62,717 nt of DNA, filler included, from Platydemus manokwari (GCA_037951405.1; 6 parts of 6 records of this genome joined end to end with filler, not necessarily neighbours in it); one strand, 5' to 3'. Shown: positions 18,956 through 28,079, counted from the first letter of the whole stretch. The notes: generated by a model not told the origin, from the sequence alone. A program made the numbers and translations.

Positions 18956-19646
18956 ATGGATATTTGTCATTAAATAAACAATTTATTACTTTAAATAAAT
19001 TTATATTCTAATTTTACCAACACCATCTTTCAAATACAATGTAAATGGAATAACAATAAAATCTATTACATACACATTCCAAGAATATTTGAATATTTAT
19101 GTCATTAAATAAACAATTTGTGACTTTAAATAAATTTAGATTCTAATTTTACCCACAAAATTTGATTATCATTTAAATATAATATATTGGACTAATAATA
19201 CATTATTAACAATAATAAAATCCATTGTAAACAAATACATATGTAATCGAATAATGCACACATTTGTCTACTGCCAACATGAGTATTCTTCCTAATGCGC
19301 TTGTATGCATTATTATGTACAATGTTGAATTTATGTGTAGAAATAAAAGGACAAATACGAACAGCTAAGGTTGTATGTGTGTTCATCAATTATTTCTAGG
19401 ACACATAAAGTTATTGGCTGTTTCCAAATTTAAACGACTAATCAAATTGGCTTATCAGACAAAAGTTCAATCTTATTTTTGATAATTTAAATTACAAAAA
19501 TTAATATTGTTTTATTTTTGGACAGATTTCAGTCAATTTTATAACATTATATCAATTATTTATTGAACATTTATTATTTGAATTATATGATGTTTATTTT
19601 AAAGTAAGCAGTTCTATTGTAATTAAAATTTTTATTTTGTCTACAG

Positions 19647-22600
19647 ACTAGGAGCCGAAGCATTAAATCGCTTGGAAGAACATTTGAATGAACAATCAAA
19701 CCAACCAACACAAATTAATCAGAAAAATATCACAAATAATTGCCTCTATTCATACACTTCAAACATTGAATCTAGTATTCTTTATAATTTATTATTAACG
19801 GATGACGGATCATTGTCTAAACCTAAAAGTCTACTAAATCCAAATTATAAAATCAACATTGACCAACCAATGCCACCCAGATCAAATACTATTTCATATT
19901 GTGAACAGCATCATGATCCTGTCAATCTCTCTCCCAGACCTTATTCAGCACCTCAGTCTTTAACAGAAAATTCTTCAAATATCCGAAAACGAAAACATTC
20001 TATTATGTCAGATATCGAAGAGCTAAAAACTATGATATTTATCAAAAATTGTAAAATTAACATGTCCAAATTACCAGAAAAAGCTGATTCACCCACCTTT
20101 TCTTGTTCAACAGATTCATTTAGTGAAGAACCTATGGATTTGTCGAAAACCGGTGACCAAATTCAAATTCACAGCACAGCATACAATGCCAGATCAATTG
20201 TTATCTCGTGGCTTATAGACATTGTTGCGATGATAAATCCTAATAATGAACAGTCCAATCGAAATCTTGCAGAATTATCACTAAACGTAAGACTGCATTT
20301 ACTTCAGTCTACGTGGCATAGAATTATTGTGACATATTTATTCGAACATTTAATGAAAACATCAAATATTCACATGGAAGGAATAACAAAATTTATTGCT
20401 TCATTGAGTGGAATTAGTAACAGATCAGTATTGAGTAATAAAAAAACTTCGAAAATGTACAAAACTCAGCTAGAAGAATTAAATAATATATTATATCAAA
20501 TAAAAAAACTCAATCTTGATCCAAATTCGATGCATTTTTTTAGATTGGGCCTCTTTTTAACAGGTAATTTGTTTATTGTTTGACAATTTAAATTTCAGAC
20601 AAATTATTTATTCATAGATATTATGTTTAATAATGAATAACTGACTTATAAAATAAAAATTACAAAATATATTAATGAAATTTTTAATAAGATAAATGTA
20701 CAAATGCGATTTTAAATAATATTCATATTATTTGAATTTTGTAAATCTTTTTATAAGTGTAATTAGTAAGATCATTAATTGAACACACACTTCAATAATT
20801 TCCCGAATTTCGATTTAATCAAAGTTTTAGTTCAATATAGATATTCTATAATTAATTTTCAATTATATATTAAACAATAATTATTAGAAAATTTGTTCAT
20901 GAATATCTAATTTAAGAATTATAGTGCGATTCATATTTTGCAAGTTATTTGTACTTTACTGACATTCTAATTATTACCTAGCGTTAATGCTTAAATTGAA
21001 AATCAATTTTCTGCTGTCAATATTTACAATTCGAAAATATGTATTACGTACTACATAGTAAAACGTTATGAAAATGTAGAACGTTAGAAAAATAGAAATT
21101 TGTGACTGATGATTAGTTGTAGATTTGACTGTTTTGTTCCCCATCAATTGGAAAAAATAGACAGGTTTATGCTATAAATTTTTTATTGGTAAATATTATT
21201 TCCAGAATTATCATTTCTACATGAATGACATAATAAGAAAACTTGTTAGAATTTATAATTAATAATTTATACTGTAATGTTGGCTTTTCAAATATTAGAA
21301 GAAACTAAGATTGTAATAGTGATTATTCATTAAAACAAAAATGATTAATCAATCAGTCAGATAAATAATGATTAAATTTGACATAATAAATTATTTGAAT
21401 TTTTTAATAAATAAGATCTAATTTACAATGTTTGATCAGTGGGAAACTATTAGTAAAAATCTTGATCCAAGAAAAAATTTTAATCACATTTTTAAAATTT
21501 TCAAATCTAATTGATGATCTCGATTGTAATTCTAATAAAATTTAACTGCTAAATTAAGATTAGTTTTCATTAAATATTCGATAATTACTATAACATATCA
21601 CTGATATTTAATAATGTAAATCTATATTGAATTTATTAATAAGTCTGTACAAAACTATTTGTAAGTAAACTCATTCACTAACGAACGTAGAAATAATGTG
21701 AAATGTTAGCCAGTCATCATTTCATTTCATATGAGAGATGTATTAATTGACGAGAGAATGAATATGATTCACTCTATGTTAGTCTTATTAATTTTAAAAA
21801 AGTCCTGAATAATTACTGAAAAAAATATGTAGATCTTTAAAATCTCAAATTGTTTCCAAAAATGTCGAAAAAATTATAGAATAAAATCATAAATATTTAT
21901 GTAGGTGATGTGTAATCATTGTATAATTGAACATATAAAATAAATTTTATTTCACCATATCATTTTAGTTCAAGTTCTATGATTGATCCTGATAAAACTT
22001 TCACAACAGTACATTATGAATAAATCATGACGGATGTTGACTGATCTATATTAAGTCTAATTTAATTGTTGATTTGATTTTTGGTATTTCATAATTCAAG
22101 TGTAAATTTAATTCAATGCGCACTTTAGGGTTAAAATCGAAAATCGTATGAATTATTCATTAAATTATATACCTAGATTTTCATTTAACGTATTCTAATT
22201 TTAAAGAATAACATGGCAATGGTCAAGTGAAAATAATAATTTTTTTTCATTCGAAATTCATCACGTTAAATTAAACTAATTTTAGTAAAAATAACCACGA
22301 ATAACATTTTCAGGTCGCTACTATTCTTCAAATAAGTATATCTTAATACGAATCTATTTATAATTAATTATTATAATTAATGTTTATTTTCATATTTATT
22401 CTGTTTACATAATTGAAATCTGGCGGAAAATTTCTTTTAAATCACTTCTTTAGATTAAATTCTTTAATTAAATTAATACACAAAAAATAATTAAAATGTA
22501 GATATAATAACTACGATTAATGTTACAATCAAAGTTGATAATAAAAATTTATTTTCCACATAATGCATTGGATGAATTTTCTGCAATGAACAAAGCTACT

Positions 22601-23458
22601 TTAATCATCGTCAGGTAAGAACTACGTAAATGTAGGGGTTTGCTTGTAGAAATTGTAATCGGCCAATTTTATCTAGTGGCTAAAATGATGTACTTTTTTG
22701 TTTCATTTATAAACTCTAGACAGATGTCCTAGTTTTGTAGACACACTGTATTACATGCTAGGATGAAGGTGGAATTTTCTTCCCGGCATTGTCTGTGAGA
22801 CTTTATCACAGTAACACACACACAATCTCGTTAGCAGTTTCCGAGTGCATTAAGTTGAGTCAGTTGCTGGTAAAGCAATTGTCGAGTCTATTGATCTGTA
22901 TAATGGAAATATATTGTGTTTGGTTAGGAAAGAAAAATATTATTTTTAATACGTTTTTTCTCAGATTTGTTTTTGCAATTTTGAAGGTCATTATTATAAT
23001 GTCGATCAACGCGATTTTGTTATTTTAAAAATATATCATAAATAGAACATTAGTAATCAAAGTAATGTGATACTGTTTAATCATCACGTAATTGATGTGA
23101 ATAGAGCAGTTTTTCGTCGCTTACAATTTACAAATCGATTTAAAATAATCAATTCCACTTTATGAATAGACTTTGAAAAAATATTTTTGGAAAACATTGT
23201 TATTTATTATATGTAATTAATGTAATATTTTTTATTTTTTCTCTAGGAAATCATGATGAAACAAATAAAAAGAATCTAAATCTTATAGAAATGTTCATTC
23301 ATTCGAAAATCGGGATAAATGAATTGAATATATCAATTATCAGAGATACCATTGATAACGTTTTGAAATTAAACTCGGTGATTATTGAAACAATCTTTTA
23401 CGGCCATCTCGATGAGTCGGTGGAAAAAGTTATTGAACATTTACTTCATCAATCATGA
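19647..23458 (+). CDS. Divergent nuclear hormone receptor (hinge/disordered region plus ligand-binding domain, NR2/NR0B-like); 5' end uncertain
   Basis: Exon 19647-20563 (acceptor CTACAG, donor GTAATT) splices in phase 1 to exon 23247-23458 (acceptor CTCTAG). LBD signatures: LAELSLNVRLHLLQSTWHRI (F..L...DQ..LL...W), QIKKLNLDPNSMHFFRLGLFLT (L.lD..E...Lka..LF) and the C-terminal VIIETIFYGHLDESVEKVIEHLL (H11/AF-2-like). RKRK basic motif and EEPMDLSK lie upstream. Candidate 5' exons are 19279-19302 and 19350-19369. Confidence 0.75.
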
Positions 23459-26400
23459 ATTATTATTTTTATCATACCTCGATAATTTTTCTATGTTGCT
23501 TTATACCAAATGTCAATGCATGTAAAAAAGATTTTTAAAATAATGTTATTTTTAAGTTATTTTAGTTCTGTTATTATAAATGAAATGGATCACTAAAAAG
23601 AGAAATCTTGTCTTATCACGAAAAAAACTTGAATGTGTTTTGTATAAATTATTTACTTCGAAAGAATCTCGAGGTTAAATAAGTTCAGTGGATTAGTACA
23701 CTTATAGATTTGAATCGGTTGATTTTTAGAAGATGACGTAATCAGAAATACATGCACAAAAATCAGCACTTTTGCTTATTTGTTACTTTATTCTAATATG
23801 GCATGTTAGCATATAATGAGAAATAAATTTGGATGAATCAGCAATTATCTTTAGTAGTGATAGCGCAGAAAAAATCCGTGAGTATTTCCTTTTGATTTGT
23901 GTTTGTATGTAAATGATTTTGGTACAAAGTTAAATTTCTTTATTAGGCAGCTTTGTCGATAAAAATTACGTCACAGTTGCCCAGTTACAAGCATGAGTCA
24001 TTTGATTTCTTTATTTGGCCCTGATTATTTCTAAGATTATACTTAAAAGAGAATTTGTTTCTCTGATTAAATTATTTCATGATAAACAATGCTGGTTCGT
24101 CCTCGTTACTTACAGTTTGTAGGATTAACAATATTATGAAATAATATTTCTAACATTAGAGGAAAATTTTATTTATTATTTTGGTAATAGTTTTGTTTGA
24201 TAAGTAGTTTATAATTAATAAAATAGCTGCTAAATTAGGCAGATTTTACTGAAAATTTTTAGTTGAAACAAATTTCACTGATCACTAATTTCAACCGGTT
24301 CTTTTTAGTTAGGACTTCAATACACTTCACCGTTCATTATATTAATGCTCCTTAAATGTAATGCATTCCGTATTGATAACTGAAACTCTTTATTAAAGTT
24401 ATGTATTTATAATCTTCTAATTAATATTAAAATCCTTTCAAACGGTTCTGAAAGATATGCTTCTTCATAATATGAATCTTGTTTCATCTTACTACACGAG
24501 ACAAAGATTTGAATATGTATTAATTTTAAATGATGAAGACTGTTTCAATGTGATGGTAGATATACCTTCACAGATGAATTACAAATCAGACTACTTTCAT
24601 TTATTAAAATTCTTTAGTTGTTTTTTATTAAACAAATTTGGTAGTGAAATTATAATTGAAAATAGGTTAAAAAATGCCGTGGATTATATAAAAGCTGAAA
24701 TCAAAAACGTTTTATTTAAGAAATACTAAACTTGCTTATGAATTCGAAAAACTTAATTTTTAATAATTGATTAATTTTTATGGATAATGTTAAAATCTTT
24801 AATTTTTTATAAGTAAAAGCTCAAATACAAAATTTCCCATTAAATTAATTTTGGTTTTTTAAAACTATACTCGAATAATCTCTTATAATAAATCTCTTAT
24901 GTAAACTCTTATAATCTTCCAGTAAATTGATGTTTTGTGCAAATTTAAAATTACTTTGTTACATATTAGAAACATTTGGCAGGATAAATTCTTAATTAAA
25001 ATAGCTCTTTGAATTCTATTAGAATTTCCTCAACATTAAATAAATATTGCAATAAAATTTATTAGAAAGTTTTTTAGGACTAGTTCATGAGATCGTACTA
25101 ACATTAATTTAAATGCTTAATAATCTTCGTGACAAACATACTAGTTATCATGATATAAAAAATTTCGTAGATTTATTAAGTTGACATGGTAGTTATGAAA
25201 TGGAACAACACTCAATTAGAATTAGACTAAACGCATTGGATTTAACAAAAAAGGACACGAAAATAGTATATTACCATTTTGTAGATAAGTTAAATATCAC
25301 AATTGGTGAAAGTCTATTAATCTACTTTAGTGCTTATTTAAATTTACTGATAAAGTTACTCTCACCAGCTCGTGAGTCTCTTAATATTGCAATACAAAAA
25401 TTATCAAGCAAGACAAAATAATATCTTAACCTTTCACAATTATATGTGAATTTGCAAGGGTTAGGTTTAATAAAATACAGGTTGAGCTTGTCAAATAATT
25501 TCGAAAGTTATATATTGCTATAATAACTATCTGACTTCATTGTCTGTTACCCTGTCTATACTACTCGATAATATTTAAACAGATAGTAATAATAACAATA
25601 AGGACAAATTTGATTTAAATAACATATTCAAATTATCAAAATAAAGGAATAGACTTTGGTTTAACCCAATCAAGATATTAGTATAACTATTGCTACATAT
25701 TATAGACTGCAAGAAAACATCAATGGGTCTTACAAGGTGGTGCAATATCTTGTTAAAAGTAGTGGGTATGTGATAGTGTTGGTCTGCTAATGATTTTCAT
25801 AGACTTTGCTTAAACATTTAATAACATTACCAGTTTGTATATTGTTGCAAACTATAAGTTTGAATAGAAGGTTTTAATCTTGAGAATAACTAAACATGGA
25901 GATAATAATATAAATTTCAAACTATAAGTACCTTGAATGTTACGCTTAATCCTTGTTTAAAGTTTCTTCGTAAAATTATAGTGTTTAAATTTCGACGAGT
26001 GAGAACTGATATTTTTTGTTGTAACTTTAAATGCGGAGAATAATGGCCGAATAATGAGTAATTTTGTGATCAAATCTTACCCTTATGTAGTAATTTTCCG
26101 CGAACGCGAGGGTTGTTAATGCTTTGTTTGTTCTTTGAAAAAGATAAGATATGGGATTTCTATGAACAGTTTTTATACTAATTACTTTATTGGCCTTTGT
26201 TTGTTTTCGTGTCTTTATGTTTTATTTATTCGTATTGATCTGCTTTTGGAATCGTTTCTTCGCACTGTCTTTATTATTTACTTTGTATTTGATTTCATGA
26301 TTAATATATTATTGGATTGTGTGTGGTTTAAGACTGAATTATTTAATGATCTGACTCCAAAATCCATGGTAGTTGTCATACTGCAGTAATATGCGTTATT

Positions 26401-28079
26401 GATAAATCAAAAAAAATAAATGAATAAATATATTTAAATCTACTTGATTTGTTTTCAACTATATATGTTGCTTGGTACACCAGAAAGCGTAATATCAAGT
26501 TTAATTTGTGGAATTGGAGCGAATCTATTGATTGATTTCCTGTGGCTCTACGTTTCTACGTGTGAGTAGAATTTTGTCTGCCTTGAATTTATGTTTGTGA
26601 AATTTTCTCTCCTTTATCAAGTTTTTTTCACGTGGTATTGGTAATGTGACAAGAGCGCTTTTTATATCTCTTTTTGCTTTGTGACATATTTTTATTTATT
26701 TGCACTTTCATTTAAACGTATTTTTAAATATAATTTAATGTATTGTTTGATCTTAAATCTGGATTATTTACTATGATGCACTATTTTCATTAACTGATAT
26801 TTATTTAATCTATTTGTAGAAATATTTAAGTTTAAAAGTAAATATATGATTATATTTAGATTATGGATTATTAGAGTTATGTGTAATTTTTTTTCAGAAT
26901 TAATTATCCCTTAATTGGGATTTTGCCAGGGTGGGGTCTGTACCCAATAATATATATTGTTGAGTACAACTCATAATAAATAATAATTATTAATGCAAAT
27001 ATTTTTTTCCAAATTGTACAATGACTCACACGAATAGAAGATAGAGATATTTCTACCTAAAAATAGAATAAAAGAAATATGAAAATAGAAATGAAATAAA
27101 TGAGTTACTAAATATAGTAACTATAAAAATAAATTGGTAAAATTAGTATAGATAAATTCTAAAAATAGAATAAAAATCTAAAACAAAAAAATTAACGATT
27201 TAGAAAACAGTATAAGAGAAAAAAGAATAAAATAAAAACCGCTCTTTACGAAGTCTAAGAAGTTACTAATATAATCGAATTTTGCGAATCTTATTTGTTT
27301 TATCTGAAAGTGGCAAACTATTCTTGTCACATATTATATTAATTTGTTTATATAATTGTAATTAGATGCAAAATTTGATATCGAGGGTTTTCAGTTCATT
27401 TTCAATGCATGCTTTATAAAATAGTGTATTATAACCTGATTTTAATTCAATTTTTATATTGCTATTTATATTTTTATACAAATTGCTGGATCACTTGTAA
27501 TAATTATTATAGATTATTATGATTATAACTACATTGGCAACAGGTGACAATAACCAAATGATAATGAAGTTGAACAAAATAAAAGTAAGTTTGAATTGAC
27601 CAGTGAACGAATTATGAAATTATGCGTTAGATGAACAATTAATATTAATTATTAGATAAACTTGCGAAGCTGGAATATCAGTGGCTTAAACATGGTTCGT
27701 AATATTTTTTGGAATATTTAAACCACCTGGGATTTTTTGAAATTTCCTTTTCTAATATGTCCCATTTGAATGAGAACATAAAATATGGTATTTAGTAGTT
27801 TTATATGAATACCTTCATTTTATTTTAATTTTATCGAGATAATTATTATTTAATACTAGTTTTTATGACATTCTTAGGTTTATAAAAAAATGAAAACATT
27901 TTATTATTCATTATTTTGGAATATTTTCGCTTGAAAAAATCAATCAAAGGTTAAAAATATGTTAATCTCAAGGTTAGATTGCAATTGCAGAACATTTATC
28001 CCACATCCGGGTCAAATGTTCCAGATCGATTATCATTTTAAAAGTAACGCATTGGATTTCTGTGTGCATTGGCTTTATC

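Follow-up and report, generated by a model that had tools for sequence, protein, structure and literature searches.

Does the planarian Platydemus manokwari possess a nuclear receptor that lacks a DNA-binding domain (DBD), and if so, from which receptor lineage does it derive? The question is raised by a locus within a 62,717-nucleotide stretch of DNA (the window; GCA_037951405.1, parts of six records joined end to end with filler), whose first letter is position 1 of all coordinates given here. A preliminary description of this DNA had noted a divergent ligand-binding domain (LBD) with a CtBP-type PMDLS motif and had read the gene as a possible independently derived, LBD-only repressor. On balance, we conclude that the gene most likely encodes a 382-amino-acid atypical nuclear receptor without a DBD, NR0B-like (DAX1/SHP-like) in architecture and probably also in descent. 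The earlier observation was thus largely right and its interpretation right in kind, while the 5' gene model was wrong and the proposed origin is probably wrong as well.

Gene structure and conservation

The examined piece of the window (positions 18956-28079; 25% G+C, zero N) contains a single long open reading frame (ORF), 19672-20583 on the plus strand. Its translation has exactly two relatives among 5.8 billion clusters. The first (P0001) comes from a Logan contig of another organism, locus L001, and is 83% identical over the large exon. The second (P0002), 72% identical over the same exon, is the 361-residue Schmidtea mediterranea 'hypothetical protein' AFJ24814.1 (I1ZIG0). On sequence grounds AFJ24814.1 is the orthologue of the window gene: the two have exon junctions and motifs in common, and differ in a 15-residue stretch that is found in the window and in L001 and is missing from S. 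mediterranea. The protein is unannotated in databases and was traced to a record batch that also contains Ndl-5 (AFJ24803.1). The window exons were searched separately, and this natural S. mediterranea protein served as a stand-in for the spliced product. The coding product of 382 amino acids is assembled from exons of 17, 920 and 212 nt:

19587-19603, plus strand: first coding exon (its coding part at least), ATGATGTTTATTTTAAA, followed by the donor GTAAGC at 19604
19604-19646, plus strand: intron of 43 nt, phase 2, GTAAGC...ACAG with the acceptor at 19645-46; a homologous short intron is present in L001
19647-20566, plus strand: large exon of 920 nt, with the N-terminal helix, nuclear-receptor (NR) box, candidate nuclear localisation signal, PMDLS and LBD-like helices H3-H8
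20567-23246, plus strand: intron of 2680 nt, phase 1, GT...AG, splitting a Gly codon after LFLT
23247-23458, plus strand: last exon, 69 2/3 codons plus TGA (23456-23458), predicted H9-H12

The first coding exon consists of ATGATG and 11 further nucleotides, which encode M-M-F-I-L and two bases of a Lys codon; the spliced N-terminus is MMFILK-LGAEAL. The S. mediterranea protein, which begins MFIFK-LGAEAL, agrees with this exon. In L001 the counterpart is ATGATGTTTATTTTGAA, then GTGAGC: the exon (17 of 17 bases) and the donor are near-identical, while the flanking intron has diverged. An in-frame TAA lies upstream of the ATG (19542-19544) with zero AG dinucleotides between the two, and since no acceptor intervenes we take this ATG as the start codon. 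At the other end, the ORF of the large exon (19648-20565) closes with ...ACAG followed by GT (20566/20567). The 2680-nt intron is confirmed by the S. mediterranea protein, which reads LLTG/NHDE across the junction (G/GA), and the last exon is 84% identical to its C-terminus. In the sole public run that carries this stretch, the DNA is genomic and runs colinearly through the introns.

The large ORF and last exon of the preliminary description are therefore borne out, being joined in phase with an orthologue that spans the junction. The same does not hold for its two 5' exons, 19279-19302 and 19350-19369, which are superseded by the conserved ATG exon downstream of them. The phase arithmetic of the earlier model holds, but its product, MSILPNAL-DKYEQLR, has no counterpart in the S. 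mediterranea protein. Neither this protein nor the second planarian species shows such exons, and the pair at 19279-19369 on the plus strand was rejected as coding.

Compared with L001, the large exon has a nonsynonymous divergence (dN) of 0.094, with synonymous sites saturated (proportion of synonymous differences, pS, 0.8-1.0). To judge by this conservation, the gene is real and purifying selection acts on the protein. When the halves are taken separately, dN is 0.091 for the N-terminal and 0.098 for the C-terminal half, with synonymous saturation in both. Constraint on the N-terminal half, which had been described as disordered, is thus about equal to that on the LBD-like half. The description agrees with a predicted local distance difference test (pLDDT) score of about 30 and an absence of helices in the model, but is a prediction only. 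Invariant islands of the N-terminal half are LGAEAL.RLEEHLN, ESSILYNLL, QPMPPR.NTIS, SPRPYSAPQS, SSNIRKRKHS and DSF.EEPMDLSKTGDQ.

The orthologous exons also differ in composition. The G+C content is 45% in L001:85-1002 and 31% in window 19648-20565, a strong compositional shift between exons whose proteins are 83% identical.

Absence of a zinc-finger domain

The open zinc-finger pattern CxxC(10-20)CxxC is absent from all six frames of the piece 18956-28079, and Pfam scans of the exons, the protein and the domain gave zero matches to PF00105. The earlier report that no C4 zinc finger is present stands on both counts. With the start codon located in the conserved ATG exon, the encoded protein has no room for a zinc-finger domain. 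The protein that starts at this exon therefore combines an LBD-like domain with the lack of a C4 zinc finger, as expected of an NR0B receptor.

An ordinary receptor could nevertheless be hidden here if DBD exons lay upstream of the piece and an alternative isoform skipped the 17-nt ATG exon, splicing directly to 19647. The acceptor at 19647 would be in phase with any upstream exon whose last codon is cut after its second base. The piece holds just 631 nt upstream of the ATG before the contig edge, and the one public run with this stretch is genomic. Several features make such an isoform very unlikely. The S. mediterranea protein record begins at the homologous ATG exon, and this exon and its donor are kept in a species in which synonymous sites are saturated. 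The in-frame stop before the ATG, with no acceptor following it, closes the reading frame upstream. In addition, where a DBD and hinge would be expected, the protein has a conserved N-terminal region of 125 amino acids that includes an NR box of its own.

A putative ligand-binding domain

The C-terminal half of the protein was assessed with sequence profiles and with predicted structures. Two features are of relevance:

20155-20566, plus strand: first part of the LBD-like domain, predicted H3-H8, identified by its best match to PF00104 and by fold searches
23429-23446, plus strand: VIEHLL, similar to an activation function 2 (AF-2) helix, five residues before the stop and within the predicted terminal helix; a pattern recognised by eye

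When the domain alone is scanned, PF00104 ranks first among 24,736 Pfam families in each of the three orthologues, and the match always begins at profile position 38 and ends at 133-159. The scores are 18.4-18.9 bits for S. mediterranea (E 0.0011-0.0016; the best, P0002:180-361, reaches 18.9 bits with E 0.0011) and 14.3-14.9 bits for the window pieces (E 0.019-0.029), with E 0.0019 for L001. The full-length AlphaFold model is unusable (pLDDT 34). AlphaFold2 applied to the domain alone, without templates and with planarian rows only, yields nine helices with a pLDDT of 57 and a predicted template modelling score (pTM) of 0.49. In a Foldseek search with this model, nuclear-receptor LBDs make up 46 of the best 50 matches in the PDB (E 0.2-0.6, template modelling (TM) score 0.3-0.4). 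VIA-align returns nuclear-receptor LBDs for 20 of the best 50 among 48,161 cluster representatives (Z 5.4-7.4); LRH-1, GR, SF-1, EcR, USP, ERR, FTZ-F1, VDR, Rev-erb, DAF-12, FXR, CAR, PNR and ROR are among them. Both lists are clearly enriched in nuclear-receptor LBDs, whose fold is a three-layer alpha-helical sandwich. The best structural match is RXR-alpha, with a Z of 7.8 and a root-mean-square deviation of 5.2 Å over 138 residues (model 7-196 versus 264-440), and the alignment is colinear from H3 to H11. At the extreme C-terminus, VIEHLL follows the AF-2 pattern hydrophobic-hydrophobic-x-E-hydrophobic-hydrophobic, as judged by eye only.

Several results weigh against an NR0B-like receptor, most of them concerning this domain. 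The maximum PF00104 score of 18.9 bits stays below the Pfam gathering cutoff of 23.5 bits, and the three orthologues are not independent trials of that profile. Pfam scans of entire exons or of the entire protein do not detect the family. Pairwise phmmer and profile searches of PDB sequences gave no true match. An exhaustive HMMER search of 1.84 billion representatives found the planarian relative only, with a profile covering just H3-H8: it kept 145 positions because the columns of the last exon were half-empty, and H9-H12 were searched by a word-based tool only. Each fold-search score is insignificant when taken alone (Foldseek E 0.2-0.6, Z below 8), the confidence of the model is low, and ranks 1 and 2 of the VIA-align list are unrelated helical proteins.

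The C-terminal half might accordingly belong to a planarian-specific nuclear helical protein with repression-type motifs, its LBD signals arising by chance from N/K/I/L-rich sequence. Besides the sub-cutoff score, the silent whole-protein scans and the low pLDDT, two further points speak for this: the PDB heavily over-represents nuclear-receptor LBDs, and for a helical model the structural Z values stay below 8, where the tool's own note warns of possibly unspecific values up to about 13. We nevertheless regard a chance origin as unlikely. PF00104 tops the Pfam library in three orthologues in the same register, and the 20 LBDs among the best 50 were drawn from a redundancy-reduced library in which their share is estimated at well under 1%. 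The H3-H11 alignments are colinear, an AF-2-like helix stands at the extreme C-terminus, and the intron is placed as in an LBD. The evidence is therefore sub-threshold but consistent: a sequence profile and a template-free model jointly indicate one family in one register, with no single number being significant. Homology of the C-terminal half to a nuclear-receptor LBD appears to us quite probable. The earlier claim of a recognisable LBD thus holds in that this half is LBD-like, but the similarity lies under the PF00104 cutoff and is not seen in whole-exon or whole-protein scans.

Other matches were rejected. Whole-exon and whole-protein Pfam scans gave Med21 (E 0.02-0.05), which is taken as chance similarity within the N-terminal half, a region of low complexity. 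Searches of PDB sequences returned prenylcysteine oxidase, penicillinase repressor and coclaurine N-methyltransferase, which were also judged to be chance matches. An ankyrin-repeat giant of 3597 amino acids (P0003) reached E 1.6e-06 against the domain profile; it was rejected because its score adds up many weak matches between the segment GENGRLIVNSWLIDIV..NPNNE and one repeat unit at a time. It is an example of an E-value inflated by repeats.

Candidate docking and corepressor motifs

The large exon contains four short elements upstream of the LBD-like domain:

19648-19686, plus strand: N-terminal amphipathic helix LGAEALNRLEEHL, conserved in three species; predicted helix 2-19 in a low-confidence model
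19774-19794, plus strand: SILYNLL, an exact LxxLL NR box of the DAX1 type, invariant in three species
19984-19995, plus strand: RKRK basic cluster, within the block SSNIRKRKHS that is invariant in three species
20131-20145, plus strand: PMDLS, a CtBP-binding-type PxDLS motif, followed by K, within the block EEPMDLSKTGDQ that is invariant in three species

SILYNLL, which the preliminary description did not mention, is an N-terminal LxxLL-related NR box as found in NR0B receptors. The repeats of human DAX1 and box 1 of SHP are of the same I-L-Y-x-x-L type. In sea bass DAX1 the box reads NSILYNILKS (PMC1891300), and six of the seven residues of SILYNLL agree with its SILYNIL core. DAX1 and SHP dock via such boxes on the AF-2 surface of other receptors (PMC1891300). 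Structures of LRH-1 and SF-1 that contain SHP peptides are among the PDB matches of the domain model.

The RKRK cluster and EEPMDLSK had been noted before, and both are identical in the three planarian species. RKRK is a plausible candidate nuclear localisation signal. PMDLS lies in a conserved region that is predicted to be non-helical, with low pLDDT, and would thus be accessible; the same PMDLS recruits CtBP in Knirps (PMC9890238). The suggestion that LGAEALNRL forms a Sin3-type helix did not survive comparison with the definition of the motif. The Sin3 core is AAxxL (PMC9890238), and L-G-A-E-A-L supplies GAxxL, one of the two alanines. A Sin3 role of the N-terminal helix is speculative.

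Probable relationship to NR0B receptors

Likeness to NR0B was drawn from motifs, intron placement and published descriptions of NR0B proteins. The DAX1 gene consists of two exons, and its intron occupies one and the same LBD position in all taxa; it falls at amino acids 221/222 of 301 in sea bass, and in human NR0B1 exon 2 begins in phase 1 at c.1169, within codon 390 of 470. The SHP gene likewise has two exons. An NR0B gene is expected to carry a single intron in its LBD, some 80 codons short of the stop, and in the window gene an intron in phase 1 precedes the stop by 69 2/3 codons. As in DAX1 and SHP, the bulk of the protein is encoded in one exon with a single phase-1 intron some 70-80 codons from the end, the zinc-finger DBD is missing, the C-terminal LBD-like domain has an AF-2-like end, and an LxxLL-type box is located in the N-terminal part (SILYNLL versus SILYNIL in sea bass).

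Major differences from DAX1 and SHP can also be observed. The planarian LBD is divergent and remains below the PF00104 cutoff. The spacing from the box to H3 is about 125 residues and includes the RKRK cluster and the PxDLS motif. The gene has an extra first coding exon of 17 nt with a 43-nt intron near the ATG, and its last exon is shorter by about 11 codons. To our knowledge, neither DAX1 nor SHP has a described CtBP motif; both work with other corepressors.

NR0B receptors are present in other spiralians. The oyster CgNR0B (EKC26839) consists of an LBD only (PMC4070562). Platynereis nr0b1/2, with LxxLL-related motifs, belong to genes that were 'long considered vertebrate novelties' and were lost from arthropods and nematodes (PMC13012086). 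Flatworms are unmentioned in both studies (PMC4070562, PMC13012086). The oyster and Platynereis proteins resemble the planarian one in being lophotrochozoan, in lacking a zinc-finger DBD and in carrying LxxLL-related motifs, and differ from it in that they are identifiable as NR0B by BLAST and phylogeny.

A forward RT-PCR primer for CgNR0B, CGAGCCCATTGACCTGTCTT (PMC4070562 supplementary file 3), reads E-P-I-D-L-S in frame 2 and meets a stop in frame 1; frame 2 is the only plausible PxDLS frame. The oyster NR0B thus probably also bears a PxDLS motif in its D/E region.

The principal competing origin, and the one proposed in the preliminary description, is that an LBD-only repressor arose independently in flatworms: a canonical receptor would have lost its DBD and gained LxxLL and PxDLS motifs convergently, without descending from NR0B. 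The extreme divergence of the protein fits this scenario, as does the fact that no relative was detected outside planarians. The best structural matches are LBDs of NR2, NR3 and NR5 and point to no specific group, short linear motifs evolve easily, and flatworm surveys show extensive receptor loss and divergence (PMC8363021). The comparison with NR0B argues the other way. The NR box resembles the DAX1 box in its core and flanks, and the gene is built like those of DAX1 and SHP, with a single phase-1 intron between a big exon and a small last one. NR0B is found in other spiralians, and in the oyster it probably carries a PxDLS motif too. The DAX1-type box, the place and phase of the intron and the oyster and Platynereis genes make descent from NR0B at least as likely, so that 'independently derived' has become doubtful; we consider it rather unlikely. 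Since NR0B orthologues exist in molluscs and annelids, a divergent NR0B-like corepressor fits better.

The resemblance to NR0B has its own weak points. The position of the planarian intron, after LFLTG, was aligned by eye with LFNPD at the end of H8, the presumed site of the DAX1 intron. An intron at this site may be common to other receptor groups, and it therefore supports LBD homology more than NR0B specifically. A chance LxxLL occurs in about every second protein of such size and Leu content, and class-III-like boxes, with S-hydrophobic-LxxLL, can be prone to convergence. The oyster motif is suggested by a primer, and PxDLS goes unmentioned in the text of the oyster study (PMC4070562).

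An NR0B-like receptor remains the favoured explanation, followed by independent derivation, then by a C-terminal half that is not an LBD, and last by a hidden isoform with a DBD. A wider proposal is more tentative, and we put it forward as a possibility: flatworms may keep a rapidly evolving NR0B, inherited from the bilaterian ancestor, that was missed by every flatworm receptor census, in a spiralian lineage wired to CtBP via PxDLS (PMDLS in the planarian, probably PIDLS in the oyster).

Proposed mode of action

The protein is most likely a repressor of the DAX1/SHP type. Its parts follow one another in the order N-terminal helix, SILYNLL box, RKRK, PMDLS and divergent LBD-like helical domain with an AF-2-like end. 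After entry into the nucleus, the LxxLL box, and possibly the LBD-like domain too, would dock on partner receptors that are bound to DNA, at the coactivator groove of their AF-2. Coactivators would be outcompeted at this groove, and CtBP would be brought in through PMDLS, resulting in trans-repression of other nuclear receptors. The corepressor role proposed earlier is thus supported in its DAX1/SHP-like logic, and strengthened by the SILYNLL box, whereas the origin proposed with it is doubtful.

Functional parallels exist among proteins of different architecture. RIP140 and LCoR reportedly contact CtBP through PxDLS-type motifs, in work of Vo in 2001 and Fernandes in 2003. RIP140 (NRIP1) and LCoR combine LxxLL docking on the receptor AF-2 with CtBP recruitment, the mechanism proposed for the planarian protein. 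They lack an LBD-like domain and show no sequence relationship to it, so the analogy is one of function only. It is through this combination that they repress agonist-bound receptors (PMC1693901). Drosophila Knirps (NR0A) is an atypical member of the nuclear-receptor family with an identical PMDLS; it has a zinc-finger DBD and no LBD, which is the opposite truncation.

Surrounding sequence

Some 430-630 nt before the start codon, an AT-rich direct repeat of 63 nt occurs in two copies (18960-19022 and 19095-19157), spaced 135 nt apart and with 90% identity. A duplication in the promoter region or a small satellite could account for it. Within the long intron, a block at 22556-22855 has a G+C content of 36.7%, twice that of its surroundings (18%), compared with 31-35% in the coding exons. 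It overlaps an ORF of 79 amino acids (22789-23028) with zero Pfam matches, and no Rfam family matches the block even at E 1. Among the possibilities for this block are a conserved intronic element, the remnant of a transposon and an exon that has escaped annotation.

The interval 23459-28079 yielded no recognisable second gene. Three downstream ORFs on the plus strand (24457-24729, 25200-25421 and 26135-26389; 73-90 amino acids, without a significant Pfam family) have probably arisen by chance in AT-rich intergenic DNA. Scanning the piece for Rfam families and for tRNAs gave zero matches.

Implications for planarian receptor signalling

The receptor sets of flatworms, parasitic species among them, have been counted by their DBDs, and such a census lists 27 in S. 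mediterranea, with zero NR0 members (PMC8363021). An NR0B-like gene would escape such censuses, because the DBD is used as the search query and the LBD lies below the Pfam cutoff. The gene described here is a credible candidate for the first DBD-less corepressor of the nuclear-receptor type in flatworms, with its S. mediterranea orthologue held in GenBank as a hypothetical protein. The small size of the gene, its clear and mutable motifs and the ease of RNA interference in the organism make the corepressor model directly testable.

NR0B activity in an annelid was shown only in 2026 (PMC13012086), and a planarian member would, if the assignment is true, extend NR0B to Platyhelminthes. The link from PxDLS to CtBP would then be a corepressor route undescribed for vertebrate DAX1 or SHP. 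Planarian receptor signalling is implicated in reproduction, patterning and metabolism, and an LBD-only trans-repressor would represent a missing regulatory layer of it.

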